A DNA stretch of 64,000 nucleotides from contig JBLDXI010000042.1 of the NCBI GenBank assembly GCA_047495785.1, positions 4,712,001 to 4,776,000 on the forward strand, written 5' to 3'. Positions 8,725 through 36,868 of the stretch are shown here, piece by piece (the stretch's first letter is position 1; each line of letters starts with the position of its first letter). The notes beneath the pieces were generated by a model. That model ran no database searches. It saw nothing but the letters and a program-made list of their open reading frames with translations, and was not told the origin of the DNA. The stretch is from Lepidodermella squamata (Eukaryota; Animalia; Gastrotricha). The translations under genes and the position numbers were made by a program.

Positions 8725-11700
8725 TCATTTCGGGTGAATCATCGTCGTGATTTCGTTCAACGATGACGTCAACGCTTTCTCCAGGCTATCCAAGCCATTT
8801 TCGAGATCGTTAATTCGATTCGTGAGACCGCTCGAATCAACCACCGACTGGTTATGTAGCTGCTGGCTATTCAATTCAGAATTTTCACGCGCTAAACCCG
8901 CAATTCGACTGAGAGCTGATTGCGACGGCTTTGGCCTTTCTCGGACCGACTCTCTAGGCGGCCGATTTCTAGCAATCGAAGTTATGGTAGCTTTCCAATT
9001 CAGCTGCGCACGTTTCGTAGACGCTGATTTGTCTTGATCACGCTTGGCAATCACTAAATTAATTAGAGAAAATTATTAATAATAAATAAATAAATTATTT
9101 ACTTCAAGAAGAAGAAAGAAACTCATGTTTTATTGGAAAAAACACATATGGCAGATAATTAAAATAATTAAAATTAATTAATCATTAATTAACCAAAATT
9201 CAATTTTTTTAATTTTTTTGAAAATTTTCAAGAATTTCAAGAAAAACTTACAATCAAGATTGCGAAGACCAGCGACCCGGTCAACGATGTGCCCGATTGA
9301 TTCGCGAACTGCCTTAATTTGGCCCTCGATAGTCAGCCGATGCGCCTCCATTTGCGTTTTACTCATCGAAACTAGCATTTCACGCTCGAAAATTCGCAGT
9401 TGTTCAATGTGGCTAGCCTCGTACATCGATGACAAATTGTCACGCTTACAGGAGCCGAAAATGCCGTAGGGTGTGAAGTGGAAAATGAACCCGATGGGTG
9501 GCGGCAGCCAATTTTTCATTATGGCCCATTTAGCGACAAGGAAAAAGTTGTACTTCCATACTTGAAGAGAATTTTGCTGAACATCACCATAAACATTGCT
9601 GAAAAAATTTGAAATTTTTAACAATTGAAAATAGATTTTTTTTCAATTTTTTCATAATATTAAAGGCTTTTTAAAAGGTGATCCTTACTTGAGAATGGCG
9701 ATGAGGAGATTGCATAACATAATTTTGGCGACAATAAGATAGGCCGCCAGGGTGATGGGCAATAATTCGAAGTTTTGCGGGCACAGTTGGCCGTAAGAAT
9801 CGAGGCCATAAGCGTAGGTGTCGTTATCGGCGCAGAAATACTCTGACGAAGGGTTGAGGGTCATATCGTACGAGTTCCACAAGTTCCAGAACGGGAAGTA
9901 GATGATGTTGTCGAATGTTTTGTAATTCGCAATTTGATCGCCCCGAAACATTATCGCAGATCTGAGGACCCCAAAAGCAACTATAAAAGGAAGAGGTTAA
10001 GAGATGAACCCGAAATGAATTATTAGGCGTTATTTCTTACCCATGAAAATGATGAGAATTATCAGCCATCGTCCCAATTCGATCAACTGGAAAAATCGGA
10101 AAAATAAAGTTAAATAAAATTGATTCAAAATTCTAAAATTGATTGAAATTAAATTTACCATTTTAATTTAATTGAAACCTAAAATTTAATTTGGGTATAA
10201 AAATTGAGAATTTAGAATTGAGAGTCGCAAAAGAAATATGCAGAGAAAATCCCTAAATAATTCATGAATAATTCCAGTAATTCTAGGGAAAACGGGGGAA
10301 ATCAGAAAAATCCCGGGAATCAAACAGGTTTTCGCAAACATATTTCTCGATTAAAACGCCCCAAGTCTACAAATTTGGAAAAATTACCGAGAATTGCCAA
10401 ATATTCAAACCATTTCGGGACACAGATCAGGGCTAGGGTTATTAAATCATTTGGGAACTTCATTTAAACAATTGAATAAATGGATAAAACTGAGAATTTT
10501 GAATTCTCAAAAAAATTGAAATTTTATTAAAATTATCAAAAAATAAATATTTTAATTTAATTTTACCATCTTGCGAATCATGACCAGCTTCGGCCCAAGC
10601 CACGGATGTACGGAGAAAACGCGAGAAAATCGGCAAATGAGAATGAACAAACAGCTCGCTAGCAACACCTTGCCTCGATAATTCAGCCAGAAATCATTCT
10701 GAGCCGACAACCGACACGCAACGCCCGCAACGTGGAACACGTAGGCCGCTAACGAGGCCGGGTTCCACACGGACCATTTCAACCAGCGCTGGAACTTGCG
10801 CTGCATATTCATACCCTGCATGTGGCCTATCTCGGCCAGCGAATCGACAAACAACGTGAAAGTCCAGCAATAAATCGCAATTTCAACGGGAGACGCATCG
10901 TCGGAGAAATCGAAAATTAACACATAGGTATACATAAGTAGATAGAGCAAATACGACAAGTGCCATAGTAGGAATTTAGTGACTGGAGCTCGGTAGAAAG
11001 CGACTAGTTTTTGCGTAACCGACAACCGCCCGTCCGATTCATCGCCCGGCTTTTCAATGTCAAGCGCCGGGATGATGAAGGGTAGAAATAGCGCGAGAAA
11101 CGTGACCAGCGACCCAGGCTTTATGCCCTGCTTCCACAGGGTGTCCAACGCGTCCTGGCAGCACGTTGTCGATAGGAACGACTGCGTTTGAGCCGACGCG
11201 CCTAGCTCGAGGCAGTTCGACCCGCTGACGATTTCGTACCGCCGTTCGACGAGGATTAACGCGCGTTCGCTGTGCGCCTTGTAAGATTCGTTGCACAGCG
11301 AGCAGGCTAGTTCTTCGAAGTAGTTTTTCGACTCGAGGTAAGAGTTGCGCAGATCCAACTGGTGGCCTTCGCACGTGCCGGCGAGGGCGTGGAAAATTTT
11401 GGCGGCGACCAGAGCTAGGCACAGGCAGTCGTCGGTGCGTTTCCAGAAGAATTCAGCCATTTTGGGGCGGTTTAATAGAACGGCAAAGATGAAGAGTTCG
11501 CGGCAGGGATTGCTCAGGGCGAGGTTGGCTATTTCCGGCGTGAGGCTGAATTCGGATCGAGAGCTCAAGGCATCGAGATTGTACCTGGAAAGAGAGAATA
11601 AAAAAATGAAAATTGAGAAGAAACTCAAGTGAGTGGATATCAATTTGATCTTGGTTTGAAACTAGGCTCAGCTTTCAGAAGGCATCTTGAAACCTCTACA

Positions 11701-14700
11701 AATTTACTTTCAGTGATTCTTTGAATGAGAGCTTTAGACACATTTCTGGTTCAATAAATCACCAGGCTGATGGATGATTGCTTCATGGTAACCTTAAACA
11801 GGGCATCAATTACTGATCTTGTACATTTGTAGATAAAAATGAATCATCCCAATATCTCGATATGATTAATGGTTCTTGTTTTTAGTGTTCATTCCCCACA
11901 CCACGTGGGTGTGGGGGTGAGCCGAATCCCGGCGGTACTGCAATACCGGGCCGACTCGTGGACGGGGTCCAGCAAGCTGGCGACACCCGCCCTGATGGCC
12001 AAAAATCAGGCTAATATCGAAGCCCCCACTTGGAGGGCGTTGTAGATATTAAACTACAAAGAACAGATACTACACTTTGATCATAGCCAAAAAGGCCGAG
12101 AAGCGATAACCTGAAAGTGGCACCGGTCAAATCGCCGCGTTCTGGGATGAGAAGATAATAGGGTAATCATATCGTTTGAATAGGAATAGAACATCAATGA
12201 GAGATCTAGGATCGAAAATTGGCCATGGGACCAAAGCGAGACGAACCCATTGCTTCAAAAGATGCATATATATTAGGAAATCAAATCAACCAAAAATGGG
12301 ATTAAGGAAACTATAGGATTCTTCATTTAGAGGGTTCGAATCCTGATGGCCGATTGGGTCTTTTTCATTGATCCTTACTCTTGATCGACTTCAATAACCT
12401 AATTTGACTGAGTCTTCTGTTGTAATTCACCTTAGAGTGCGGCGATTTGACCGGTGCCACTTTCAGGCTATCGCTTCTCGGCCTTTTTGGCTATGATCAA
12501 AGTGTAGTATCTGTTCTTTGTAGTTTAATATCTACAACGCCCTCCAAGTGGGGGCTTCGATATTAGCCCGATTTTTGGCCTCCCGGGCGGGTGTCGCCAG
12601 CTTGCTGGACCCCGTCCACGAGTCGGCCCGGTATTGCAGTACCGCCGGGGTTCGGCTCACCCCCACACCCAAGTGGTGGGGGAATGAACACTAAAAACAA
12701 AGTACCTCCCAGAAACCTAATCTTGCAGTTTCACTCAATGTTGACTGCTTTAATTCCTGAGAAACAAATAGGCCATTGGCCGATTGAAAAAGCGTGACAA
12801 TTTTACAGCAGATCAGAAGATTAGCAGCCTGTGCTGATAGCTGATAGATGATGAATCATCAGATCGTGGGATTAAATTTAGATCAGAAATCAAATGCATC
12901 AAGCAGGAGTAAACTTGCTAATCTGAAAAGGATTCAACTTAGGGAATTTCTAATCTGAATGTGAATCTGAATCTGATCCATGCTGAATTTTTTGTTACAG
13001 AGGTAAATGACCGGAATTTCAAAGATCAACCAACAAGTTTCTACAGAACTCAGTGAAATTCAACTGGGAAATCTTCTCAGTTTGGGCAAGCTCACTCGAA
13101 TTGACCTTTTATTGATTACTGCTCCACTTTGGAAAATTGACCTGAGTGATTACGCTTGGGATCATTAGTCACCCAGCTGCTATGCCCGAGTGGTTAAGGG
13201 GTCTGACTTGAAATCAGATGCGGTCTCCGCGCGTAGGTTCAAATCCTACTGGCAGCGAATCACTTTTTACTAATTCAAATTTCTAATCGAGGCATTATCA
13301 CTCGAAGATTCATATTCTGGGATCCTAATCTCCTTATTTTAATGTCATTGCCTCGTTCACCTTACTCAAGTGTTCTAGAACTTTAATCTATTTAATTCAT
13401 TTCTATTGGCCCGATATTAAAACTTGGAGTTAGTCTATATAATTCATATCATAAATAATCATGAAAACAAAGTTCATTGATTTACGCCACAAAACTTACT
13501 CGTCATACGGATCGTCGTTAATTGGCCTCACAATCGATGAATAGTAGCATCCAATCAGCGAACTGATCAATTTATGCACCGTACACAGCCGGATATTGCC
13601 ATGGCTAAGCTCGCGTTGCAAGGTCGAATCCAAGCCTCGAGCCGCTATTCTCAACCTCCGATGCAAATGGTTAGCATCCGGCGTGTTCCTATTCGAATCG
13701 GCCAGCACTTCTTTGTAGAGCCGCCTCAACATTCCAACCGTCAACAAATCGTTGATTACGATCCCGTTCGATAGCGATACATTGAGAAATTCAACTCGGT
13801 CTTTGACTATAGCTTCGAAAATGATATCAGCCACTGAACTTGAATCAAAAGATTCATTTTGATTGGCGAAAATATTTTTCTCAGCGATATCGGACCGGTT
13901 CCACGTCAAAGCGAGCCTTAATTGTTCCTTCAAATCTTCCACAGTTTTTGTTTCTAAAAAAAAATTCGGAAAATCATTAAAATTTTTTATTTGGAACAGC
14001 CAAAAGTAGAAATTGAAAATTTTCGGTTTCGGAATAAAACTTGTGAAACTTCAAATGAATACGAAAATTTTAAAATTGTTTTGTTTTTACAAGATTGAAA
14101 AAAATTTGAAATTAAATTTTTGAAAAAGCCTTCTCACGTTTTTTATTAGCAAGGGCTGCTAAAATCGCGTAATCGAAGTCCTCCTTATCCGAGACGCAAT
14201 CGAAGGCGGTTAACAGTCGCGAATCAACACAGCAAGCCTTGACATCGACTACAATTTGATCTATCCGCTCATTGCAATACTTGAGTAGCGCAAAGGGCAA
14301 GTTGTTCAGGTAGAGAAGTCGGGGCAACACGTCAGTTTTCATGTCCTTGTAAGCTTGTTTCACTTTGAGCAATTTATCGCCGTCCTGGTCGTTAGCTGCA
14401 ATTGGCTGGTCGAAGAATTTTTGCAAAAATTTCTCATAATAAGACCGGTAAATTTTGTCACGGAGTTGCTTTAGCGCAAAATCGCTGAAAGTGCTGAAAA
14501 ATTGAAAATTTGAAATTAGATTCCTAATAACAAAAATGAAATATTTTCTTACATTTCAGACCCATTTCGAATGCAGTTTTGAATAGCATAAGCTAAAATA
14601 TCCGCAGCTCGGCCGGTTCCAGCGCAAGAAACCACCGGAATGCCAGCTTTTATCGACTGGGCACAACCTTTTATAGAATCATCACCGCCCTCGACTAGAA

Positions 14701-17700
14701 CGACAACAACCGGAATTCCGAAGTAGTCACCGTCAATATTGGCCGCTTTTTTCTTAGCTGAAACTAGATTCTCGAGCTTAGCCCGAAAATCGCCGACTTT
14801 TGGGTCGAACGTGTTTCGAGTGCCGTTGTCGATGAGTAAATAATGCGTATGATGGGGGTTGAGGCTAAGCGTGGAGCCGTGCTCGATTATGGTCGAAGGT
14901 TGATAGTCGAAAACACCGCCGAGCTGTTTATTCGGCATGTAATCTTGAGCCGCTTCAAAATTGTTGTTCGATTCAACGCCACCTAAATAAAATAAAAAAA
15001 TTAGAGAAAGGAAATTCAAAATTTATTTTATTTTTCAATCTTGAATTTAAATTTGCTACTACCTTAAAAATTTCGATTTTATTATTGAAATCTAAAATTT
15101 TGAATTTTGAATTTAAAATTTGAATTTTGAAATTGTTTGTTTGTTCACTAAAATTTTTCAATTCGAAAATTACTTAAAAATACTGGCAATTTGAGAAAAA
15201 AAATATGTTCAATTTAAATGGAATAAAATTATGATTGAACTTCAAATACAAATCCAAAATTTCTAAAATGGGAAAATACCAATTGGAGCTGTTTGCGCCA
15301 ATCCATTTCTGGCCCGATTCAAACGCCGCATTCTGCCCTCTTCGGCTATGAGCTTTTCACGATTTTTCACGTAGCCCCAGGGTGCGATTCCAATGCACCG
15401 AACGGCCTCTCTCGGCTGGCCATTTTCATCGAATGTGACACCCTGCCATTCAGCAACCGCATCACCGACCAATTTCATGACCCCGGCATTGAAACCGCCA
15501 GTTATGATCCACGCATTGGTCGACTTGGCCGCCATGATTAAGCCAGATTTGAAAGTTTCACTTATTTTCGAGTCCATTTTCAAATTTTTCGCACCGCCTA
15601 GAATTGATATGACTAAACTTGGCTTCGGCGTGAATAGGGACCAGTGCTTTTTGAATAGGTCCAACACAACGCCCATGTCTGTATCGTCGGATATTCTGAT
15701 AAAGTCTGATATCCTTCGAACGCCTTCTTCCTGGAGAAATCGAATTTTCCCAGCGGCGTTTGTTGGCAATTTGTCTATTGCAACTTTTGCTTCCCATTTT
15801 TCGGCCGGGGCTAGATGGGCTGGCTTTTGTTGCGGGATTTGAGCATCTTCCAAGGTGGTTGGCAAACTATTCTTGCCGTTGTTTTGCTGCTGCGATTTAC
15901 TTCTGTGAAGCTCGTAGTAGTGATTTTCCAAAGTTTCTCCGCAATGACACCTGAAAAATTCAAATTAGCTTCAGAATTATAAATTTGATCATCAGTTATG
16001 AAGAATCTCCAGTGTAATCCTTAATCTTGGAAAAAGCTTCCGTGGGTTCTGTTAAGGAGATAAATGAATAGCAAAAATGATTCGCTGCCAGTAGGATTTG
16101 AACCTACGCGCGGAGACCGCATCTGATTTCAAGTCAGACCCCTTAACCACTCGGGCATAGCAGCTGGGTGACTAATGATCTCAAATCTAAATAATTCAAT
16201 TTAGCGATTAGGTCATCAGTCAAGAACATGTAAACTGGCCCAAGGATCATATTATACCTACTAATCATTAGCATAGCAGTATCAGTGTGAAGCTGATATA
16301 ATATTGCTGGCTGGTATTCATAAATTGGCAATCCAAGGGAAACATCGATAAGATTATCAGCATTCAGATTTAAAATTTCCTCGATATAGATCCCTTACTA
16401 GGATAAATTGTAAAACTTTGAAGGGGACCTGAGTTATGATCTAAATTTAATCCAACGATCAAATGATTCATCATCTATCAGCTATCAGCTTTGCCGGCTA
16501 GTTTCATTTTCAGCGTGAAAACGTCATGTTTTCACTCCACGGATGGCTGATTGCTTCTCCGATAAAGCAGTCTACAATGAGTCAAGCTGCCAAATCAGAT
16601 TCGAGGAAGATATTTGTATTTAGTGTTCATTCCCCACACCACGTGGGTGTGGGGGTGAGCCGAATCCCGGCGGTACTGCAATACCGGGCCGACTCGTGGA
16701 CGGGGTCCAGCAAGCTGGCGACACCCGCCCGGGAGGCCAAAAATCGGGCTAATATCGAAGCCCCCACTTGGAGGGCGTTGTAGATATTAAACTACAAAGA
16801 ACAGATACTACACTTTGATCATAGCCAAAAAGGCCGAGAAGCGATAGCCTGAAAGTGGCACCGGTCGTCTCGCCGCATTCTGGGATGAGAAGATAATGGG
16901 ATATTCGTATCGTTTGAATAGGAACAGAACATCAATGAGAGATCTAGGATCGAAAATTGGCATTGAGGCAGGAACGAGACGAACTCATCGTTTCAAAAGA
17001 TCCATGAAATTGCATGTATATTAGGAAATCAAATCAAGCAATAATAGGATTAAGGAAACTATAGGATTCTTCATTTAGAGGGTTCGAACCCTAATTGCCG
17101 CCTGGATCTTTTTTCATAGATCCTTACTCTTGATCGATTTTTATAAGCAAATTTGACTGAGGTTACTATTGGAATTCACCCCAGAATGCGGCGAGACGAC
17201 CGGTGCCACTTTCAGGCTATCGCTTCTCGGCCTTTTTGGCTATGATCAAAGTGTAGTATCTGTTCTTTGTAGTTTAATATCTACAACGCCCTCCAAGTGG
17301 GGGCTTCGATATTAGCCTGATTTTTGGCCATCAGGGCGGGTGTCGCCAGCTTGCTGGACCCCGTCCACGAGTCGGCCCGGTATTGCAGTACCGCCGGGAC
17401 TCGGCTCACCCCCACACCCACGTGGTGTGGGGAATGAACACTAAAAACAATAATCATTCGAGTCCCCCGCCACTCACCAGCCCTTTGCTGATGTTTACAA
17501 TCCCACGTCGAAGCAGCAAAATAAGATCAGTCATCGATCAAATACTAAGTGCTGAATCATTAAAAACATTATTACTTACTTGGCACTTTGCTTCCCATTA
17601 TCGTGAGCTTTCTTGTCTTTCGATGGCTCTTTCAGAACCGGCATCAGACACTCCTTCATCTGAACCTCGTTCTTCTGAAGAAACTTGGCCAACTTCTCCA

Positions 17701-17892: not shown

Positions 17893-19755
17893 CTAGCTCG
17901 ATTCCAACAAAGCAGAACATTTCACGGCTAGTTCATCAGTCGGAAATTTGTGATCTGTTCTCAAAACTGAGTCGTAAAGTTCAACATTCGCAATATCGTA
18001 ATGCGCTTCACTCGCTAACTGCCGCTCGAATTCCGTCTCATCCGATAGGCGGCCAACGGCTCGTCTCGCTAACCAAATTCCAGTCAGCGGGGCAACGTTA
18101 AATTGCGAAAATCCAGTCGAATTTATCTTAAAATCAGTCGATTCAACAATGGCAAATTTTTCGCTGTTATTCGCACATTTTCCGTGGATTCTCAGCGAAT
18201 AAGCCCCAGCGTCGACTGAAATTGAGACATAATTCCAGCTAAACGGCTCGATTTCAGCCTGGGAGCTTTCAATGCCCTGTTGAGTTAACAGCAAACTTTT
18301 CCCGCCTATTGTCTCTAGATTCATCACTTGATTAGCCGGATCGCCGTATTCGATTGATAAAACAATCGCGCGACGATTTTTTCGGAATCGAACTTGCGTA
18401 TTGATTTCGTGAAGTCGAAGCCAAAAAATGAGTGAAAACTGGCGAAATGTAACTTCAGGCAGCATTGGTAAATAAACGTGATCACCGCCTCGAAATGACA
18501 TGAAATTTTTGTTGATTTCAAGGTCTTTCTGAACTAAATCATAGCTATTCAACGGGCTCAAAATGCCATGCATCCGATTTCCGGATGAATCGGGTATTTT
18601 CGGTAGAATTTCCAAACTCAAATCTTGCATGGTCCATTTCCCAACCAGCCCTTTAGCTCTTTTGGAAGAATCTTTGTAGATAGGCTCGCAATTTTTAAGC
18701 TCCTCATCGTACCACTTCCCAGCTCCATCTTCGTCCAGCGTAAAATTTCGTAGTTTACAAAATAAACCGGTGCTAAGCCGCCAAATTTTTTCGGTAGTCA
18801 AATTTCTCAGGTAAGTTTTCCCCGTTAAACTAGCCCACATGTGAGTCATTAAATTCGTTTTGTAGTCGTAATTTCTGTCGTAATAAGCCTCCTTCAATCC
18901 TTCGTGTTCATAGTAAGGCTTCATCGTGTCTTGAAAAGCGATAATTTCCGCCGCATCTGGGTATTGGTATTGTAGAGATCGAGGTAATTGATGGAAAAAT
19001 TGCTCCAAATTAGTTTCGTCAAACATAAAATTCAGCTGTTCCATCCAATGCGCGAGAAAGGAAGACGATTTGTTAGCCATAATAAACGACATTGAAAGCC
19101 CGTTCCGGGCATTTTCGCCACTTTGAGCCATAGCAAAATCCTTTTCGAAAAGATCGCCCAAATCGCGTAGAATAATCAAATCGAGATCCAGAAAAACCCC
19201 GCCGAGTTTTTGCAGCGTTTGAAGCTTGAAAATTCCTGTCCGAGCTCTGTAATGTACAAGTGGGCGATTGGTGTTTGCAATATTTGGCAATTTGTCGATT
19301 TTTGTTGGTTTATCGACCAACTTCAGAGCTTTTTCAAACCAGAAACCACTTGGTTTATAATAGTAATACAGGTATATCGACTCGGGCTTTAGGATCATTT
19401 TAGCCGATTTGATAGCTAAATACTGATAGAATTCAAAATTGTAAGAAGTTTCATTCGCGTGAGCTGAATCTAGCCCCGTGACGAAATGAACTATTCGAGG
19501 TATTTGAGTTTTCCGTTTTGCAGTTGTCGTTTCTGGCTGAGCAGTTGTAGTTGTAGCTTCTGTTTCAGATTCCACTGTCCTTGTTTCATGTAAAGCATTT
19601 GTGATTGAAGCACCCGTGGTTTTCGTCACGAATTTCGGTTTCGGGGATGAATCCACCTCAACGTTTCCACCTGGAAGATAGCTTCGCCAAATCGCCAGCA
19701 ATAAGACGATATTGATGCATACCAGAGCAAGTATTTTCTTTTGATTAGGATGCAT
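17893..19755 (-). CDS. Type II membrane DXD glycosyltransferase (GT32-like) with a C-terminal LamG/ConA-like domain; intronless
   Basis: N-terminal TM helix; Thr-rich stem; IPRIVHF...YLAIKSA; LGGVFLDLD; HMW; C-terminal LVGKWTM...DSSGNRMHG and WNYVSISVD (LamG-like). Confidence 0.75.
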   Translation of the reverse strand: MHPNQKKILALVCINIVLLLAIWRSYLPGGNVEVDSSPKPKFVTKTTGASITNALHETRTVESETEATTTTAQPETTTAKRKTQIPRIVHFVTGLDSAHANETSYNFEFYQYLAIKSAKMILKPESIYLYYYYKPSGFWFEKALKLVDKPTKIDKLPNIANTNRPLVHYRARTGIFKLQTLQKLGGVFLDLDLIILRDLGDLFEKDFAMAQSGENARNGLSMSFIMANKSSSFLAHWMEQLNFMFDETNLEQFFHQLPRSLQYQYPDAAEIIAFQDTMKPYYEHEGLKEAYYDRNYDYKTNLMTHMWASLTGKTYLRNLTTEKIWRLSTGLFCKLRNFTLDEDGAGKWYDEELKNCEPIYKDSSKRAKGLVGKWTMQDLSLEILPKIPDSSGNRMHGILSPLNSYDLVQKDLEINKNFMSFRGGDHVYLPMLPEVTFRQFSLIFWLRLHEINTQVRFRKNRRAIVLSIEYGDPANQVMNLETIGGKSLLLTQQGIESSQAEIEPFSWNYVSISVDAGAYSLRIHGKCANNSEKFAIVESTDFKINSTGFSQFNVAPLTGIWLARRAVGRLSDETEFERQLASEAHYDIANVELYDSVLRTDHKFPTDELAVKCSALLESS

Positions 19756-19872: not shown

Positions 19873-21798
19873 TCAATTTTTAGTCGGTGCAATCTCGTGA
19901 TAATGACCATCTCGAACATCCATAGTAAGGTCCAATTTGACAAATTTAGCAGGATCTGTGCAGCTCTTATCGTAACCTCGGAGTCCAGCCAGGTATGTTT
20001 GCGGCTTTGGCACAACACTGTTTCCATCTTGTCGAACTTGGGTGGCCTGATCTTTCGGCAGATAGACCTGTGAAACGTTATCACGACGCAGTTGGCTGAG
20101 AACTGTCTGAACTGAATGCGTGGCCTTCTTCCGCATATTAGCGAGGCGCAGAGCTTGCCTTCGGAGTTCCCACTCGTTCCATTCGTAGCTTCGAACTATT
20201 GTTGGCTCCAGAATATGTGTGTCGGTTTGCGAATCAACATCAGCCTTCATTCCAACGGAAGCGCGTTTATGGTCATCAGTCGGAGCCATAAAACGGCCCG
20301 TGAAATGGCGGTGAAGCTCTAAAAATTGAATCAACTCAGGATTACGTCTAGCTCTTTCAATTATAGCGGCCACGTAAGTCGCAGGGTCGATGGCAAATTC
20401 CAAAGCAGCGGATTTTGAACTGAAAGTGAAGATCGAATCGTTTTTGAAACGCAACACGCCGATTTCAGGGTGGCCTCTCAGAATCAAACCTCGCTTCGCT
20501 AAGGCTAGCGGGCAAAACCCTCGCAGTTGAAGCTGTAGCTTCTCAAAATCACGCATAGCGTCAGGGTAGAGCCATTCGTGATCCTGAGGCGGGCAGACAA
20601 TAGAGACTCGGTTAGCTACACCGCCGTGTTCTGCACTTCGTTGCTCATCTGTCAAGACAGTCGCTCCTCCGAGCAGAGTCACCAGAGCATCATCAGGCAA
20701 GCGTTCATGGCATCTAGTGAACTGCTCCAAAGAGCTGAGTAAATTGCTTAAAACACTGAGAACGACCATCTCGTCTTGCAAAGATGACCAAATTTGGGCC
20801 AAATGAACGAATTGAGGATAAACTTGAGCAGTCGGAACTGCGGTTCGCTGCTGCACTGTAGCGCGTAACTGGTCCAAACGACGGCCTAGCTGGCTTTGCA
20901 GAGCCTCAACTTGTTCAGCGCAACGAGCCAAATCAGCAAGAATTATTGTAAGAAAGTGGTAGTGCTGACGAACATTGTACAAGCAATCTTTAACCAGTTC
21001 AATAATTTCAGCGTTGTTCGACTGGCCATTACCGGTATTCTGGAGAGCATATGCATCCATGCGCTCTAAAATTGTGACGTATCTCGCCGCACGTTCCGAT
21101 GCATTTCTCAGAGCCATTTCAAGCATTTGACTCAGGGCAGGAACAGCTTCATTTAGGATGGCTGGTAAATCATCTATGCCTTCGCCGCCGCGACCACAGT
21201 CTCTGTTGAATAACCGAATTCCAGTCACTATCAGAGCAAGCTCAATAATTTGCCGTTCTTTTTCATGCTTATGTAGTGCCAGAAATGTGGCCATTTCTGA
21301 TTGAGGAAATACACTCTGAAGTGCAGCGGCCGTTTCTCTAACAACGCCCAGCTCAGTAGGGCTTCCAAGCCCAGATCGCAGAAGAACTGCAGTTACAATT
21401 TTTCTGTAAAGTGCCTCCAGTTCATCGCGCGTTCTTGGCCGAGAATCAGTGATCTCCCTGACAGCAGGCATCATTCTTTGCTCAAGAACTCGGTGATGCT
21501 CTCTAAGAAATTCACTACGAGAAGCGTAGTTCATGTCAAAGTAAACCTGCATCTTTATTGTTTGCAGCGATGGGGCCCCAACATCCATCAGCCTGTCAAC
21601 GCATACTTTAACAAGATTCTCGACATCAGCTTTTGTCAAAGCCCGGTCAGTGCTCAGATTGTTTTGAGGATCAAGAACGGCGGCTTTCACGATAAACGCA
21701 ACCAATGTTTCCGTAACTGCCTGTCCTCGACTGGCACATTGATCTGCTATCTCACGAATGATATTCTTTATAACTGCTTCCGCGTGTACTCTTGCCAT
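19873..21798 (-). CDS. CFAP206: Cilia- and flagella-associated protein 206; intronless
   Basis: AEAVIKNIIREI, TIKMQVYFDMNY, LQSVFPQSE, IVTGIRLFNRDCG, VPTAQVYPQF, QTDTHILE, YEWNEWELRRQAL. Confidence 0.93.
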   Translation of the reverse strand: MARVHAEAVIKNIIREIADQCASRGQAVTETLVAFIVKAAVLDPQNNLSTDRALTKADVENLVKVCVDRLMDVGAPSLQTIKMQVYFDMNYASRSEFLREHHRVLEQRMMPAVREITDSRPRTRDELEALYRKIVTAVLLRSGLGSPTELGVVRETAAALQSVFPQSEMATFLALHKHEKERQIIELALIVTGIRLFNRDCGRGGEGIDDLPAILNEAVPALSQMLEMALRNASERAARYVTILERMDAYALQNTGNGQSNNAEIIELVKDCLYNVRQHYHFLTIILADLARCAEQVEALQSQLGRRLDQLRATVQQRTAVPTAQVYPQFVHLAQIWSSLQDEMVVLSVLSNLLSSLEQFTRCHERLPDDALVTLLGGATVLTDEQRSAEHGGVANRVSIVCPPQDHEWLYPDAMRDFEKLQLQLRGFCPLALAKRGLILRGHPEIGVLRFKNDSIFTFSSKSAALEFAIDPATYVAAIIERARRNPELIQFLELHRHFTGRFMAPTDDHKRASVGMKADVDSQTDTHILEPTIVRSYEWNEWELRRQALRLANMRKKATHSVQTVLSQLRRDNVSQVYLPKDQATQVRQDGNSVVPKPQTYLAGLRGYDKSCTDPAKFVKLDLTMDVRDGHYHEIAPTKN

Positions 21799-22259: not shown

Positions 22260-23912
22260 ATGGCAGCAGCTGAAAACACGGCGGCTGAGTGGCGAAAGGC
22301 TGAGGCGCTTCAAATGGAGCTGCTAGCGGTTCTTCAACACTTGGCGAGTGGAAAGGGCGGCAGTGTCCTGCCCGGTAGACGCCGGTCAATGTCAGTTCTA
22401 GCTGACTCGAGCAAAGCGATTCCTGCGCCACATGTGCTCCAGACACGAGTGCAGAAGTGTATGTTCTTGCTTCTCAATGGCTTCTTGCCGCCTGATGATG
22501 GCCATGAACCGGATGCAGCACAAACCCCAAATGGGTCGAGGAAGAGGGCTCAATCGATTACGAGGTCCAAAGGTCGAAAGCCTGAAGAAAGTAGCGATAC
22601 AACCAAGCTAAGTCCACTCGACAAGCGGTCAAAAGCCCAGGAAGAAGGGGAGTGTAGCTCCGACGAGATGGACGCCGAACAACAGCCTCAGGAGCGCCGT
22701 ACGTACGGAGAAGTTGCCAAGCAAGGGGCATCGACGGAACAGTGGTCAAGGGCGCCCGTCGACGTGAAGAACGATAAGAAAAAAGGTGACGGCAGGAAAG
22801 AGACGGCCGCCAAGGTGCTCTGCATCGACGGCTACGACCGAGAGCGATTTCCTAATGTCATGAGCGTCGTAAAAGCACTGAAAGCGATCTGCGATTGCGA
22901 ATTTGCGAAAGTCAGAGGCATGATGCGCGGTGGTGTTTCCGTGACCTGCAAAACGACAGAAGATGCTGAAGCTATCCTGAATAGCGACCTCTGGAAGAGC
23001 GATGACTTGGCGGCAAGACCATTGGGCCCGGACGCCCGGGTGCATCGACCGACTTCTGCAACGGGCGGTGTCGTCGGCGAGACAATTATCGAGTCGAAGA
23101 AAGTAGTTGTTGAGGGGTTGCCCCATGATGTGCTGGAAGATGAGCTACTGGCCGAACTGAACGAAGTAGGCGTTACCCGAGTCCATGGATTCGCTGGTAA
23201 GAAGAGGGAGAAGCCCTCGTGGGGGACGGACTGGCTACTCGTTTTCGAGGACGAAAGCCTGGCGAAGGTCGCCCTGGACGGAGGGGTGCTCCTATACAAT
23301 GTTCGCTTCCGATGTCGGCCGTGCAAAAATACACGGGGTCCGCCGCGCTGCCTGAACTGCCTAGAGTTTGGGCATCGGACAGGTACCTGTCTACGACAGC
23401 CGACGGCTTGCTCTGAGTGTGGGCAACCAGGAGTCAAGTACGGACACGCCGAATGTACGGCACCGAAAAAAGGAGACCCAGGAAAGATCTGCTGGGCGTG
23501 CAAGGAGGCTGGCGGGGACAAATTCAACCACTCAGCTGGATCGCTGGGCTGCCCCATTGCCAAGGAGCTGAGTCGAAGGGCCCACGAAGACGCACGGCGC
23601 AAGGCGCAGCTTGAGGAAGAAAGAAGGCGGAAAGCGAGAGACGAAGCCGCTGAAAGAGAAAATGCGAAACGCGAAGAGCCACAACGTCGAAATAAGGCTG
23701 GTATCAGCAAAGAAGAGGTACACAAGGTTATAAACGATTCGGTCGGAAGCGTTGCTGCGTCGGTCATTATGGAGGTAATGATGGGGCTTATCAAGTCGTT
23801 CGAAGGTATGAAGGTCAAAAACGCAAGCAACATCGTCATCGACTCGTTCGAGGCTACTATCTCTGAAAAGATCGACTGGGCTGAACTCCGAAAATACAGT
23901 AATGGAAATTAG
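22260..23912 (+). CDS. LINE ORF1, gag-like nucleic-acid-binding protein
   Basis: Three zinc knuckles: CLNCLEFGHRTGTC, CSECGQPGVKYGHAEC, CWACKEAGGDKFNHSAGSLGC; RRM-like upstream region. Confidence 0.9.
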   Translation: MAAAENTAAEWRKAEALQMELLAVLQHLASGKGGSVLPGRRRSMSVLADSSKAIPAPHVLQTRVQKCMFLLLNGFLPPDDGHEPDAAQTPNGSRKRAQSITRSKGRKPEESSDTTKLSPLDKRSKAQEEGECSSDEMDAEQQPQERRTYGEVAKQGASTEQWSRAPVDVKNDKKKGDGRKETAAKVLCIDGYDRERFPNVMSVVKALKAICDCEFAKVRGMMRGGVSVTCKTTEDAEAILNSDLWKSDDLAARPLGPDARVHRPTSATGGVVGETIIESKKVVVEGLPHDVLEDELLAELNEVGVTRVHGFAGKKREKPSWGTDWLLVFEDESLAKVALDGGVLLYNVRFRCRPCKNTRGPPRCLNCLEFGHRTGTCLRQPTACSECGQPGVKYGHAECTAPKKGDPGKICWACKEAGGDKFNHSAGSLGCPIAKELSRRAHEDARRKAQLEEERRRKARDEAAERENAKREEPQRRNKAGISKEEVHKVINDSVGSVAASVIMEVMMGLIKSFEGMKVKNASNIVIDSFEATISEKIDWAELRKYSNGN

Positions 23913-26742
23913 ATCGAATAGCATATTCAGAGTTGGCGAATGGAATCCTAGAAGCATCGTCAACGCTGGCAAACAATACGAAGTTGAAATTGTATCGAAT
24001 GAACTAGATCTGGATGGCATAGTGATGCCGGAGTCTTGGCTTAAACCGGGAAATCGGGTGAATGCGTCCGGGTATAAAGTATTTAGGAACGACCGAACCG
24101 AAACCGATGGCGGAAGTGTCTCTATTTTAATAAGAAAAAGCATCAAGGTTCTGAAAGTCAAGCGATCAATTAATGCAAACAATGTCGAGTGGCTAGCCGT
24201 TAAACTAGCCTTGAAAAATCGTGCCCCTTTGTGGTTAATCGGCGTCTACATCCCGAACGGAAATCGAGCGACTTCGTTGACTTTCCTCGACGAGTTCCTG
24301 GCAGAAGGTTCATGCCTCATCTGTGGCGACTTCAATGCTAAACACCCGGAATGGCTGGAAGGAGCGAGAGCTAACCGCGCTGGTCGAGATCTTATGAAAT
24401 TCGCGGAAACCAGACGTCTTACCGTACTAGGCGATAAAGTCCCGACTCATGAAGATGGAAATCGCCTCGACTTATGGCTGTCTACGCCTGATTTGGTTAA
24501 TCTCGTTGAGGCCTTTGAGGTTGGCGAGTCGTACGGTAGCGACCACTTTGTCACAAAGCTGGACGTTCGTCTCGAGACAATTCGTGCGGAGAAAAGCAAT
24601 AATCGATTCAACTATGCGCGGGGAAATTTCTCGAAGAAAGGCTACGAAGCTGGAGTGGAAAAAAGGCTACCAAAGAAGGGCGAAATTGAAATCCTCGAAG
24701 CTACGCCACTCTTAGTCGATTTGATGAGCAAGCAAGCGATAAATGCAATGTTGGGCTCAGCCGAAGAATTTATTCCGAAGTGTGAAATCAAAGATGTCGT
24801 GGGTTGGGTTCCGAATACGGAAATTCGAAGCGCGATAAGAGAACGTCACCAAGAGCGTAGAGCCTACAAGCTGACTGGCGATCCGTACCATTGCTACCTC
24901 GCAAACCGCGCCTATGATAGATTCAAAGAACTAATCAAGAAAAACGAGTCGGCCAGGGCGATACGAAAAATGGCCCATATGGAAAGAAACCGGAGAACAA
25001 ATTTGAAGAACTTTTTTGCCGTGTACAGCCAGCTAACTACTGGAGACGGGGCTAAATGCGGTAGCGTTCAACCACTACGGCTAAAACCCGAAGACGACCT
25101 GGTTGTCGAAGAAGGTGAGCAGGCTAAATTACTCGCAAACCATCTGCAAAAGGCCCTCGCAAAACGTGACAATGTCGACCCGGACGAAGCGGTTCGCAAT
25201 CACCACAAATCCGTGGAGAACTACTGCAAAGAAAACGAGGAAAAGTTAAAGCCGCTCGAACGAGGCGATGTCAAAATGCTAGAAAAAACCACCAAAATCT
25301 CGAAAAAGGAATTCAAGTTGGCTGTTCGAAAATTGAAATTGAAGGCACCGGGACATGATGGCGTTCAGAATATCCTGATAAAGCGAGGTGGCAACCAGCT
25401 GTGGTGGCATTTAAGGCGCATGTTCAACACGTCGCTTGCATGTGGGTACATCCCCCAGAGCTGGAAAAAGGCACTAATCGTACCGATACCGAGACCAGGA
25501 AAGGATTTGAGCTCACCTAATGGATATAGGCCGGTTTCACTGCTGCCGACAATAGCTAAGCTGATGGAGCTGTGTTTGGCTGTGAAACTGCGGGATTTAC
25601 TCGAGAAGAAGTTGCTACTGCCGTTTCACCAAAGCGGCTTTCGACGGCTCAGATCGACAAATGATCACACATTCACATTGGCTCAGTTGGCATCCATGGC
25701 AAGACTCAAGAAAGAAGTTTTGTTAGTCGCTCTATTGGACTTCGAGGGTGCGTTCAATGCTGTTGACCACTCCAGTCTGATCTACAAGCTAGAGAAGTGC
25801 GAGCATATACCGAGAGAATGGGTTAGGTGGATAGCAGCATTCCTGATCGACAGAACCTTCCAAGTTCGGGTTGGCGACACCATCAGCGATGAAACGCCTA
25901 TTGGAGCGGGGGTGCCGCAAGGATCACCGTTGAGCCCGATCTTGTTCTGCTTCTTCACTGCCGACTTGGTCACTGAACCCTCCGGTCTAATGGACGCAAC
26001 TCCGGCATCTTTTGCCGACGACGTCATGCTCTACGCGTGCGAGGTCGCGCAGGATGTGGCGATCTCCAAGTTGCAAAAATCGCTACGCGTGGTAGGTACC
26101 TGGAGTCGGCTGTGGAAACTACCTCTGAGTCCACCCAAGTGCCAAGTGTTGTGTTTTGGTTCTTGGGATCGACCTGTTCGCCTTTTTATCGGCGCAACCG
26201 AGCTGCCCATCGTGAACGAGGCGCGCTATCTCGGCATAACATTTACGACGGACTTGGTGTGGGCCAAACACATAGACGAAGTGGCGGCCAAGGCAAAGAA
26301 GGCGGTCGGCGCGCTATACAGCGTTAGTTCCAGAGGCTCGCCACTGAGCATGGCCAGCAAAATCTTGCTATACGTTACCATGATCCGCCCAATCTTGGAA
26401 TACGGATGTATGTGTTTCTTAAATGCCAGCGAGACTCAGCTGGAGAAACTGTATATCATTGAGCACGACGCCCTTAGGTGTATTGTTGGCATCACTCGGC
26501 GCGAACAATTTGAGCGAAAAATTGGCATGAATGCGCTGTATACCCAAACGGGCTTGGTTCCCCTGCGTCTAAGGTTCCGCCAATTGACAGCAAAATTTCT
26601 GCGACGCGTCACGCTGGTCGTCCCCGCGGTGGCAAAGTTGATCCAGGAGCACCGAACAAGTCCGGCGGTGGGTGGCACTCCGCTTGGCAAGGTTGTTGCT
26701 GACCTCCCCGCGCCTATGAAGGCCTTGGAGATGAAAAAATAA
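23902..26742 (+). CDS. LINE ORF2, APE endonuclease plus reverse transcriptase
   Basis: WNPRS, ESWL, GDFNA, SDH (APE); KAPGHDG, YRPVSLL, QSGFR, LDFEGAFNAVDH, GVPQGSPLSP, FADD, YLGI, RPILEYG (RT); no RNase H. Confidence 0.96.
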   Translation: MEIRSNSIFRVGEWNPRSIVNAGKQYEVEIVSNELDLDGIVMPESWLKPGNRVNASGYKVFRNDRTETDGGSVSILIRKSIKVLKVKRSINANNVEWLAVKLALKNRAPLWLIGVYIPNGNRATSLTFLDEFLAEGSCLICGDFNAKHPEWLEGARANRAGRDLMKFAETRRLTVLGDKVPTHEDGNRLDLWLSTPDLVNLVEAFEVGESYGSDHFVTKLDVRLETIRAEKSNNRFNYARGNFSKKGYEAGVEKRLPKKGEIEILEATPLLVDLMSKQAINAMLGSAEEFIPKCEIKDVVGWVPNTEIRSAIRERHQERRAYKLTGDPYHCYLANRAYDRFKELIKKNESARAIRKMAHMERNRRTNLKNFFAVYSQLTTGDGAKCGSVQPLRLKPEDDLVVEEGEQAKLLANHLQKALAKRDNVDPDEAVRNHHKSVENYCKENEEKLKPLERGDVKMLEKTTKISKKEFKLAVRKLKLKAPGHDGVQNILIKRGGNQLWWHLRRMFNTSLACGYIPQSWKKALIVPIPRPGKDLSSPNGYRPVSLLPTIAKLMELCLAVKLRDLLEKKLLLPFHQSGFRRLRSTNDHTFTLAQLASMARLKKEVLLVALLDFEGAFNAVDHSSLIYKLEKCEHIPREWVRWIAAFLIDRTFQVRVGDTISDETPIGAGVPQGSPLSPILFCFFTADLVTEPSGLMDATPASFADDVMLYACEVAQDVAISKLQKSLRVVGTWSRLWKLPLSPPKCQVLCFGSWDRPVRLFIGATELPIVNEARYLGITFTTDLVWAKHIDEVAAKAKKAVGALYSVSSRGSPLSMASKILLYVTMIRPILEYGCMCFLNASETQLEKLYIIEHDALRCIVGITRREQFERKIGMNALYTQTGLVPLRLRFRQLTAKFLRRVTLVVPAVAKLIQEHRTSPAVGGTPLGKVVADLPAPMKALEMKK

Positions 26743-35482: not shown

Positions 35483-36868
35483 AGTTATAGGTCTCTCTGG
35501 CAATTTATTCATCTAAAATTACTGACTGATTCATACTGCGCTTGTAGGTATATTACAGTCCTTATCTTTTAGTGGCATTAGTGCGCGCGCCCTGTGACAT
35601 GTGTATGTGAATCAACCAATCAGCGCGCGTATATAAAACTATGCGAAAGTGTGCATATGCAAATATCGTTACCCGCTGTGAGGGGTGTTATCTCAGAAAG
35701 CAGTCGAGAATTGGAGCAATTTAGAGTACTCTGGTTTCCGCGCAAAACGTACAAATCTTTCGCCTTTTACTAAAGATTTCCGTGCGTGGGAACATTCAAT
35801 GAGCCTTCGGGCGATTTCTTGGGCTTCTCCTCAGAAGGGAAGCGAAATGTCAAACACAATTCATGTTCATGGTAAATCAGCACTAGTCTCTCAAATCTTG
35901 CGCGCCGGAAGGGATGAGAATGGGTCTCATGCAGCATTCTCCAACTGGGCCATGGGCCGTGGGTCGGGGAGCCGCTTGATGTCTTTGATATAACTAACGA
36001 TTTCAAAGATTTGTTCTATTTTCTGGTCGCTCTCGCGGCTCAAACACCGGCTGAAACATCGTTAAAAATGAAAGAGGAACTCTATACTTATTTAAGTTAG
36101 GTGTTGAGAAGCCCTGACGTAGATAACCGCCACGACGAGTTACACATTTCTATCGGATTAGTTTCAGCATCACCCGTCTTTCCTATATTACAAGAATAAG
36201 TCTCTTTTATAATACGACAATATTTCCAGAAAAATGATGAAAAATGCATGATTCCATCTTCTATTTTATTGCAAGTTTTTCGTCAACATCGACAAAGTAT
36301 CATTTTTAAGTAGGTATAATTGGAACAGTTTGAAGCACATTTTGACAATAATAAACATTCAAATTATCACATCAGTAGAAATAATAGTGGACGGTTATAC
36401 AATATTGCAACTAAGCTCTCATGATCTGTCGAAAAATTCGCAGCGCCCCAACACCGTATTTAAGAGCAATTTCATCTTTATATTTTTGCGTGAAAAAACC
36501 TAAGTAAGCATCATTGTCTACAATTTTCTGATAGTCCAGCTAGGTCTTGGAGCCATTCATACAGGCAAGAAACAAGTAACAGGTAAAACGATTTTTAATC
36601 ATGAAATTTCATTGTGGTAAATTGTAACGAATAAGGCAGGATTAGAAATATATCTCATCGAGTGACACAAAAAGATACGACCTGGGTGCTGCATGCAACG
36701 TTGAAATTGCGATAATTTATTACTATAAGATAAACATTTAGCACGACAAAAATCCGAGAAAATCTCAACGACCGGATTTTTATTAATTTTTTTTTTGAAA
36801 AATCAGGTCATTACCAAGCGACATTTTTATACTCACAATAATGTTAATACAATAGAATAACAGGGTGT

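Follow-up and report, generated by a model that had tools for sequence, protein, structure and literature searches.

Two head-to-head pairs of U2 small nuclear RNA (snRNA) genes, A/B and C/D, each adjoined by a gene for transfer RNA (tRNA)-Ser(TGA), lie within 5.6 kb in the genome of the gastrotrich Lepidodermella squamata. We describe the arrangement of these genes and of the upstream sequence that each pair shares, and weigh the histories that could have produced it. The window is the whole stretch of DNA that was analysed, 64 kb of GenBank assembly GCA_047495785.1 (contig JBLDXI010000042.1, positions 4,712,001 to 4,776,000 of the forward strand), and it contains zero N. Unsigned positions below count from its first letter, and signed positions count from the first nucleotide of U2 in the direction of transcription.

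Cassette 1 extends over approximately 11868-13277. U2 gene A (11912-12107, minus strand) and U2 gene B (12470-12665, plus strand) diverge from spacer 1 (362 bp, 12108-12469); the 3′ flank of B (12666-12892, plus) follows, and then the tRNA-Ser(TGA) gene (13176-13257, plus). Cassette 2 extends over approximately 16065-17458 and begins with its tRNA-Ser(TGA) gene (16083-16164, minus), followed by the 3′ flank of U2 gene C (16430-16649, minus), gene C itself (16650-16845, minus), spacer 2 (373 bp, 16846-17218) and U2 gene D (17219-17414, plus). All four U2 copies cover positions 1-192 of the Rfam model RF00004, whose gathering score is 46: A, full length, scores 160.3 bits, B and C each 158.4 bits and D 159.6 bits. 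GTAGTA and the Sm site AUUUUUGG, the latter at nucleotides 102-109, are found in 4/4 copies. Both tRNA genes were called by ARAGORN as well as by Rfam, the one in cassette 1 with an Rfam tRNA score of 63.3 bits.

The U2 genes fall into two variants. Variant 1 (A and D) has T, A, T and A at +100, +112, +113 and +115, where variant 2 (B and C) has C, T, C and C; one site differs between A and D, and one between B and C. The variants, which differ by these 4 nt, have near-equal scores on the U2 model. Their four diagnostic sites straddle the Sm site, which is normally single-stranded. Compensatory stem changes were considered as a reading of these sites, but the predicted local hairpins would enclose the Sm site and we make no structural claim.

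Approximately 44 nt are conserved immediately 3′ of every U2 copy (11868-11911, 12666-12709, 16606-16649 and 17415-17458). This block can fold together with the U2 3′ end as a hairpin (…CCCCACACCCAC/GTGGTGTGGGG…) that is followed by an A-rich stretch, and from its sequence it may be a 3′-end processing signal.

The original prediction for this locus had proposed a self dot-plot; the window was compared against itself by repeat finding and BLAST. Three inverted matches relate the cassettes: A with D (11868-12150 versus 17176-17458, 97%), B with C, each together with its 3′ flank (12434-12892 versus 16881-16430, 87% over 460 nt), and the two tRNA genes with approximately 20 nt on each side (13156-13277 versus 16184-16065, 97%). 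Past the conserved 44 nt, flank homology is confined to B and C; from +45 to +230, counted from the U2 3′ end, their flanks align with 138 matches, 40 mismatches and 16 gap columns, while all other pairs of flanks give at least 74 gap columns. Between the outer flanks of A and D, likeness ends ~44 nt past U2. Together with the variant sites, which are common to A and D and to B and C, these matches identify the cassettes as an inverted duplication.

Despite the inverted flanks, the spacers are in direct orientation. A fourth match, direct, joins 11876-12700 to 16614-17450 (91% over 837 nt). Aligned directly, spacer 1 and spacer 2 score 467 (317 matches, 42 mismatches, 17 gap columns, 88% identity), and spacer 1 against the reverse complement of spacer 2 scores 30 with 125 gap columns. 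Against their own reverse complements the spacers score 50-80, their centres being non-palindromic and the likeness confined to their ends. Each U2 pair is therefore a small palindrome, in which high-identity inverted arms surround a unique, non-palindromic spacer; the arms are 11895-12150 and 12427-12682 (95% identical) in cassette 1 and 16609-16888 and 17176-17455 (97%) in cassette 2.

To locate the change from inverted to direct relationship, the four arms were aligned in the direction of U2 transcription and the two-state sites were grouped by which copies share a state. Upstream of -40, A shares its state with C, and B with D, at 52/52 such sites (AC|BD), the pattern of a direct relationship. 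Inside U2, the informative sites (4/4) group A with D and B with C (AD|BC), the inverted pattern (Fisher p = 2e-7 against the upstream sites). The AC|BD sites end at -40 and the AD|BC sites begin at +100. The pattern thus switches within -39..+99, 138 nt over which all four copies are nearly identical (A 12009-12146, minus; B 12431-12568; C 16747-16884; D 17180-17317). Because the switch from AC|BD to AD|BC falls in this interval, we place there an exchange between inverted U2 arms. The spacer is thus reversed relative to the flanks with its breakpoints inside the arms, the copies compared being paralogues and not alleles.

The AC|BD sites define two kinds of distal promoter half, L-type (upstream of A and C) and R-type (upstream of B and D). 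Spacer 1 has its L-type half toward A and its R-type half toward B; spacer 2 has its L-type half toward C and its R-type half toward D. All four combinations of distal half and U2 variant are consequently present, each once. The original prediction had set out all of this from the letters alone: two cassettes of the form U2(-)/spacer/U2(+) plus tRNA-Ser, duplicated in inverted orientation, with directly oriented spacers and each half paired once with each variant. That anatomy is confirmed, far beyond chance.

One short stretch inside the exchange interval has a third pattern. In the sense of U2 transcription, -24..-22 is TTT in each arm of cassette 1 (12129-12131 and 12446-12448) and GAC in each arm of cassette 2 (16867-16869 and 17195-17197), the grouping AB|CD. 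A complex change common to both arms of one palindrome implies that sequence has passed from arm to arm within a cassette by gene conversion. Divergence also differs along the cassettes: the central spacers mismatch at 31/273 sites (11.4%) and the neutral B/C flank at 40/178 (22.5%; p = 0.002). The lower spacer divergence, as read from the alignments, fits either a later exchange or promoter constraint.

The marker interrupts a block of approximately 45 bp (-45..-1) that is common to all four genes and reads TCAYCYYAGARYGCGGCGA, then TTT or GAC, then GACCGGTGCCACTTTCAGGYT. Being within the arms, this proximal block remains with its gene, and only the distal sequence is re-paired. The L and R distal halves are unrelated in sequence. 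Proximal elements of snRNA genes are usually around -40 to -65, and part of the core promoter may accordingly be a fixture of each U2 gene here.

From the observed anatomy and site mosaic we infer the order and type of events as follows. An inverted duplication would have placed two copies of a unit of approximately 1.4 kb, U2(-)/spacer/U2(+)/0.5 kb/tRNA-Ser, on either side of the 5′ exons of a TRPM gene. Both units are small palindromes, in which an asymmetric centre of ~280 bp lies between arms of 256-283 bp; an arm comprises the U2 gene, ~45 bp of its proximal promoter and, past the gene, ~44 bp of 3′ flank. The arms of a unit can pair with one another or with those of the other unit. At a later stage, homologous recombination through the near-identical -39..+99 would have re-oriented the centre of one unit. 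The same recombination would keep the U2 5′ halves and proximal promoters identical, that is, in concerted evolution. On the site patterns, the simplest history has the inverted U2 arms exchanging within -39..+99.

Two routes could lead to the re-orientation. In route (a), a crossover between the arms of one unit, somewhere within -39..+99, would invert everything between the exchange points. In route (b), a break in a spacer would be repaired from the other unit: after resection the U2 ends would invade in direct register, C pairing with A and D with B, and the spacer would be copied in direct orientation. The lower spacer divergence would be explained by route (b) or by promoter constraint. 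Both routes are ordinary homologous recombination and both are equally good. The earlier proposal of a crossover in the 5′ half of U2 that flips the spacer is supported as to where the exchange would lie, but as to mechanism direct-register gap repair or conversion accounts for the locus just as well.

Route (a) has precedent in primates, where spacer inversion is a documented outcome of intrachromatid non-allelic homologous recombination (NAHR) between the arms of palindromes, where approximately 50% of orthologous spacers in X palindromes differ in orientation between species, and where stability is lowest for small spacers (PMC8327919).

We put at about 0.72 the probability that the layout is a frozen product of past recombination through the arms and no dedicated switch. 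Several points weigh against it. The window is a single assembled haplotype, no orthologous locus from another strain or species was found, and the orientation of the spacer is known from the assembly contig alone. Crossover and direct-register gap repair yield one and the same layout. A differently built spacer, described next, was found in a second sample, and the locus may be more dynamic than one frozen event.

The second sample, independent of the assembly, is the only public sequencing run of the species that was found (X1 below), available as k=31 contigs, which we compared with the window over 11700-17600 (5,901 letters). These contigs break in the 119-138 nt common to the copies, so that a spacer is not linked to its flanks or to the U2 variants. 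They fall into two depth classes, one of ~35-46 that differs from the window by roughly 2-5% and one of ~6-7 that is identical to it (e.g. 13739-14627 and 15006-15331), which suggests a mixed or pooled sample that contains a major second genotype and a minor window-like one. For the flanks of both cassettes (11700-11905, 12673-12898 and 16195-16662), the major genotype has contigs in agreement with the window; across 13770-14597 it has no contig at a likeness of at least 88%.

One X1 contig, of single-copy depth (36.8), contains two joints: an opposite-strand one at 12203|17143, with 52 letters on its shorter side, and another at 12281->17110. We read its order as the reverse complement of 17143-17194 (R-type, leftward), then 12203-12281, then 17110 onwards (R-type, rightward). 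From this order the contig may represent a spacer with an R-type half on both sides, approximately 100 bp shorter; one of the cassettes could carry it as an allele, or it may come from a third locus. It hints that the palindrome centres keep changing in the species; reversible flipping is not implied by it. Another opposite-strand joint, 13110|16170, was rejected as a rearrangement, the simplest explanation being that the aligner picked the near-identical inverted copy of the tRNA.

The first alternative to a frozen product is unprogrammed flipping that is still ongoing, with recombination between the arms sometimes inverting the spacers, so that both orientations segregate or occur in some cells. 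In its favour are arms that are 95-97% identical around a 138-nt near-identical core, the arm-to-arm exchange recorded at -24..-22, the orientation polymorphism that is common among primate palindrome spacers, and the two joints of the X1 contig, which point to structural variation in the spacer of a U2 pair. Against it, the four variant sites, 100-115 nt into the arms, are unmixed in both cassettes, which speaks against frequent exchange by tracts of such length. The k=31 contigs do not bridge the identical 119-138 nt and so give no count of the two orientations. On balance we think ongoing flipping unlikely.

A second alternative is that the assembly has misoriented one unique spacer of ~320 bp between its near-identical inverted arms. 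Orientation errors of this kind are a classic problem of short-read or consensus-polished assemblies wherever inverted repeats enclose a short unique centre. The lack of any N in 64 kb despite the repeats suggests, however, a long-read assembly, and reads of a few kilobases easily span a 0.8-kb pair. Moreover, the spacers differ at 12% of sites and each is accompanied at both ends by its own -24..-22 marker; because of this divergence and this marker, each spacer is coherent with its own cassette. An assembly error is therefore improbable.

About as improbable is a different duplication history, for example one in which only the unit B-flank-tRNA was duplicated in inverted orientation, the partner gene and the spacer being converted onto C later from cassette 1, so that the spacer would not have had to invert. 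It would suit a spacer that looks younger than the flank, and also the outer flanks of A and D, which part ways so soon after U2. However, it predicts that D should be B-like (variant 2), whereas D is variant 1 and one site away from A, and it requires extra conversion steps.

The remaining readings give the flipping a consequence for expression. We consider very doubtful that the spacers still flip through the U2 arms, in the germ line or the soma, and so shift the ratio of the two U2 isoforms with no recombinase involved. With active flipping, and L and R halves that differed in strength or in tissue specificity, the locus would amount to an animal example of an invertible promoter that needs no recombinase, and the differently built spacer of X1 would be a sign of dynamism. 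The original prediction had gone further, to a functional invertible bidirectional promoter that chooses a distal half for each U2 isoform, and had supposed that no animal case was described. Our literature search indeed gave bacterial invertible promoters only, which agrees with that supposition but is no evidence for an animal one here.

All four pairings of distal half with variant do exist, as a switch would need, and the halves, being unrelated, could differ in strength or specificity. Yet among ten selected open reading frames (ORFs) of 104-946 aa at positions 24-26742, Pfam found no serine or tyrosine recombinase, smaller and other ORFs and spliced genes lying outside that scan; the set comprises TRPM, FAP206 and long interspersed nuclear element (LINE) reverse transcriptase/endonuclease ORFs and 4 without a Pfam match. 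The segment is bidirectional, so that in either orientation both U2 genes have upstream sequence, each keeping its immobile proximal block of ~45 bp and receiving one distal half, and there is no on/off logic. A switch would choose between variants with a difference of 4 nt, next to the Sm site, and near-equal U2 scores. In X1 the summed contig depth over U2 is ~3600 against ~40 for single-copy flanks. Depth is not copy number and gives a rough sign only, but it suggests that most U2 genes of the genome lie outside this locus. With both genes promoted either way and no recombinase among the ORFs scanned, we reject the switch as exceedingly improbable; it would be remarkable if true, and no support for it was found here.

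There is no sign of a switch that works at present or is regulated. The locus is a very small case of a known class, the palindromes shaped by NAHR and gene conversion, built from snRNA genes. Like the primate palindromes (PMC8327919) it has high-identity inverted arms, a unique asymmetric spacer whose orientation differs between homologous copies, derived variants common to both arms, and rearrangement concentrated at the centre of symmetry. Its scale is approximately 100-fold smaller (0.26 kb for an arm and 0.28 kb for the spacer, versus >8 kb); its arms are RNA polymerase II snRNA genes and its spacer their shared upstream region; and the comparison is of two paralogous palindromes in one genome instead of species or individuals.

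Bacterial invertons such as fimS and the promoters of Bacteroides capsular polysaccharide (CPS) loci (PMC11602134) resemble the U2 locus in placing a promoter segment between inverted repeats, so that inversion alters the pairing of promoter and gene. They have short inverted repeats, a dedicated site-specific invertase, an on/off outcome and both states in one clone, whereas at the U2 locus the repeats are the genes themselves, the scanned ORFs include no such enzyme and both genes are ‘on’ either way. Another comparison is with the flip-flop isomers of plastid genomes and similar cases (PMC12659086), in which homologous recombination between inverted repeats reverses the intervening segment without a dedicated switch function. 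Those repeats are kilobases long and the isomers form an equimolar mix in a multicopy organelle; the U2 locus is nuclear, with 0.26-kb repeats.

Multicopy snRNA genes are subject to concerted evolution, as in the tandem RNU2 array of primates. The U2 locus is like that array in that U2 coding and promoter sequence is near-identical among copies while the flanks diverge. It differs in its head-to-head pairs, in being an inverted duplication within and upstream of a protein-coding gene, and in the persistence of two variants. Three layers of history (inverted duplication, arm-to-arm homogenisation and spacer re-orientation) are held in 5.6 kb, which makes the locus a useful textbook-style case of concerted evolution and of NAHR shuffling the pairings of promoters and genes. 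Its two distal halves and two U2 variants also make up a natural two-by-two design for asking whether snRNA expression in this gastrotrich depends on distal upstream sequence.

Other genomes were searched for the locus and its parts. A 35-nt motif of the spacer matched 0 metagenome contigs. A U2-specific 34-mer matched two, both from a relative (L001:1661-1855 and L002:1487-1681); in each a single U2 with the same 5′ half is found in the ribosomal DNA intergenic spacer, between 28S and 18S. With one U2 each, these contigs contain no pair and are silent on orientation. The ATGCAAAT octamer is found ~70 nt upstream of these U2 genes. The proteins neighbouring the cassettes (ORF 17893-19755 and FAP206) gave no close relative, and hence no close genome was available in which to seek the orthologous locus.

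A U5 snRNA gene lies elsewhere in the window (35726-35843, plus strand; Rfam 90.3 bits), with the ATGCAAAT octamer at approximately -66. This octamer, common to U5 and the relatives' U2, is not clearly present in the two spacers, and comparison of upstream sequences gave no clear promoter motif common to the U5 gene and these U2 genes. A common proximal sequence element (PSE) for U2, U5 and the relatives' U2 was also considered; only loose TCACC/TTACCC-like resemblances were seen, and they are not relied on.

As to surroundings, the 5′ coding exons of the TRPM gene lie between the cassettes (13496-15931, minus strand; Pfam PF18139 and PF25508), with SLOG ORFs at 15263-15931 and 14549-15019 and a TRPM2-like ORF at 13496-13942. 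The gene runs on at 10552-11643, in a further TRPM2-like ORF, which puts cassette 1 inside a TRPM intron. The cassettes had been assigned to introns of this gene. From the Pfam matches on ORFs this stands for cassette 1, but cassette 2 precedes, on the 5′ side, every TRPM coding exon recognised here, the first of which is a SLOG exon, and lies before ORF 17893-19755, where an intron is not demonstrable. The inverted 1.4-kb cassettes thus bracket the TRPM 5′ exons (13277-16065), which are intact in orientation in the assembly. Recombination between the cassettes of the kind proposed for the spacer would invert the bracketed exons.

The tRNA-Ser(TGA) regions (13079-13275 and 16034-16230) have a summed depth of ~28,000 in X1 against ~40 in the flanks, depth again not being copy number.

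Next to cassette 2 is ORF 17893-19755 (minus strand, 620 aa), which has no Pfam domain and no homologue among 5.8 billion proteins. It is followed by a FAP206 gene (19873-21798, minus), a single ORF of 641 aa that is apparently intronless; its closest relatives, from a brachiopod, hemichordates and molluscs, are 52-58% identical, none higher, which places the genome in a ciliated invertebrate lineage that has been little sampled. Farther on, ORF 23902-26742 (plus, 946 aa) has AP-endonuclease and reverse-transcriptase domains and is apparently an intact non-LTR (long terminal repeat) retrotransposon.

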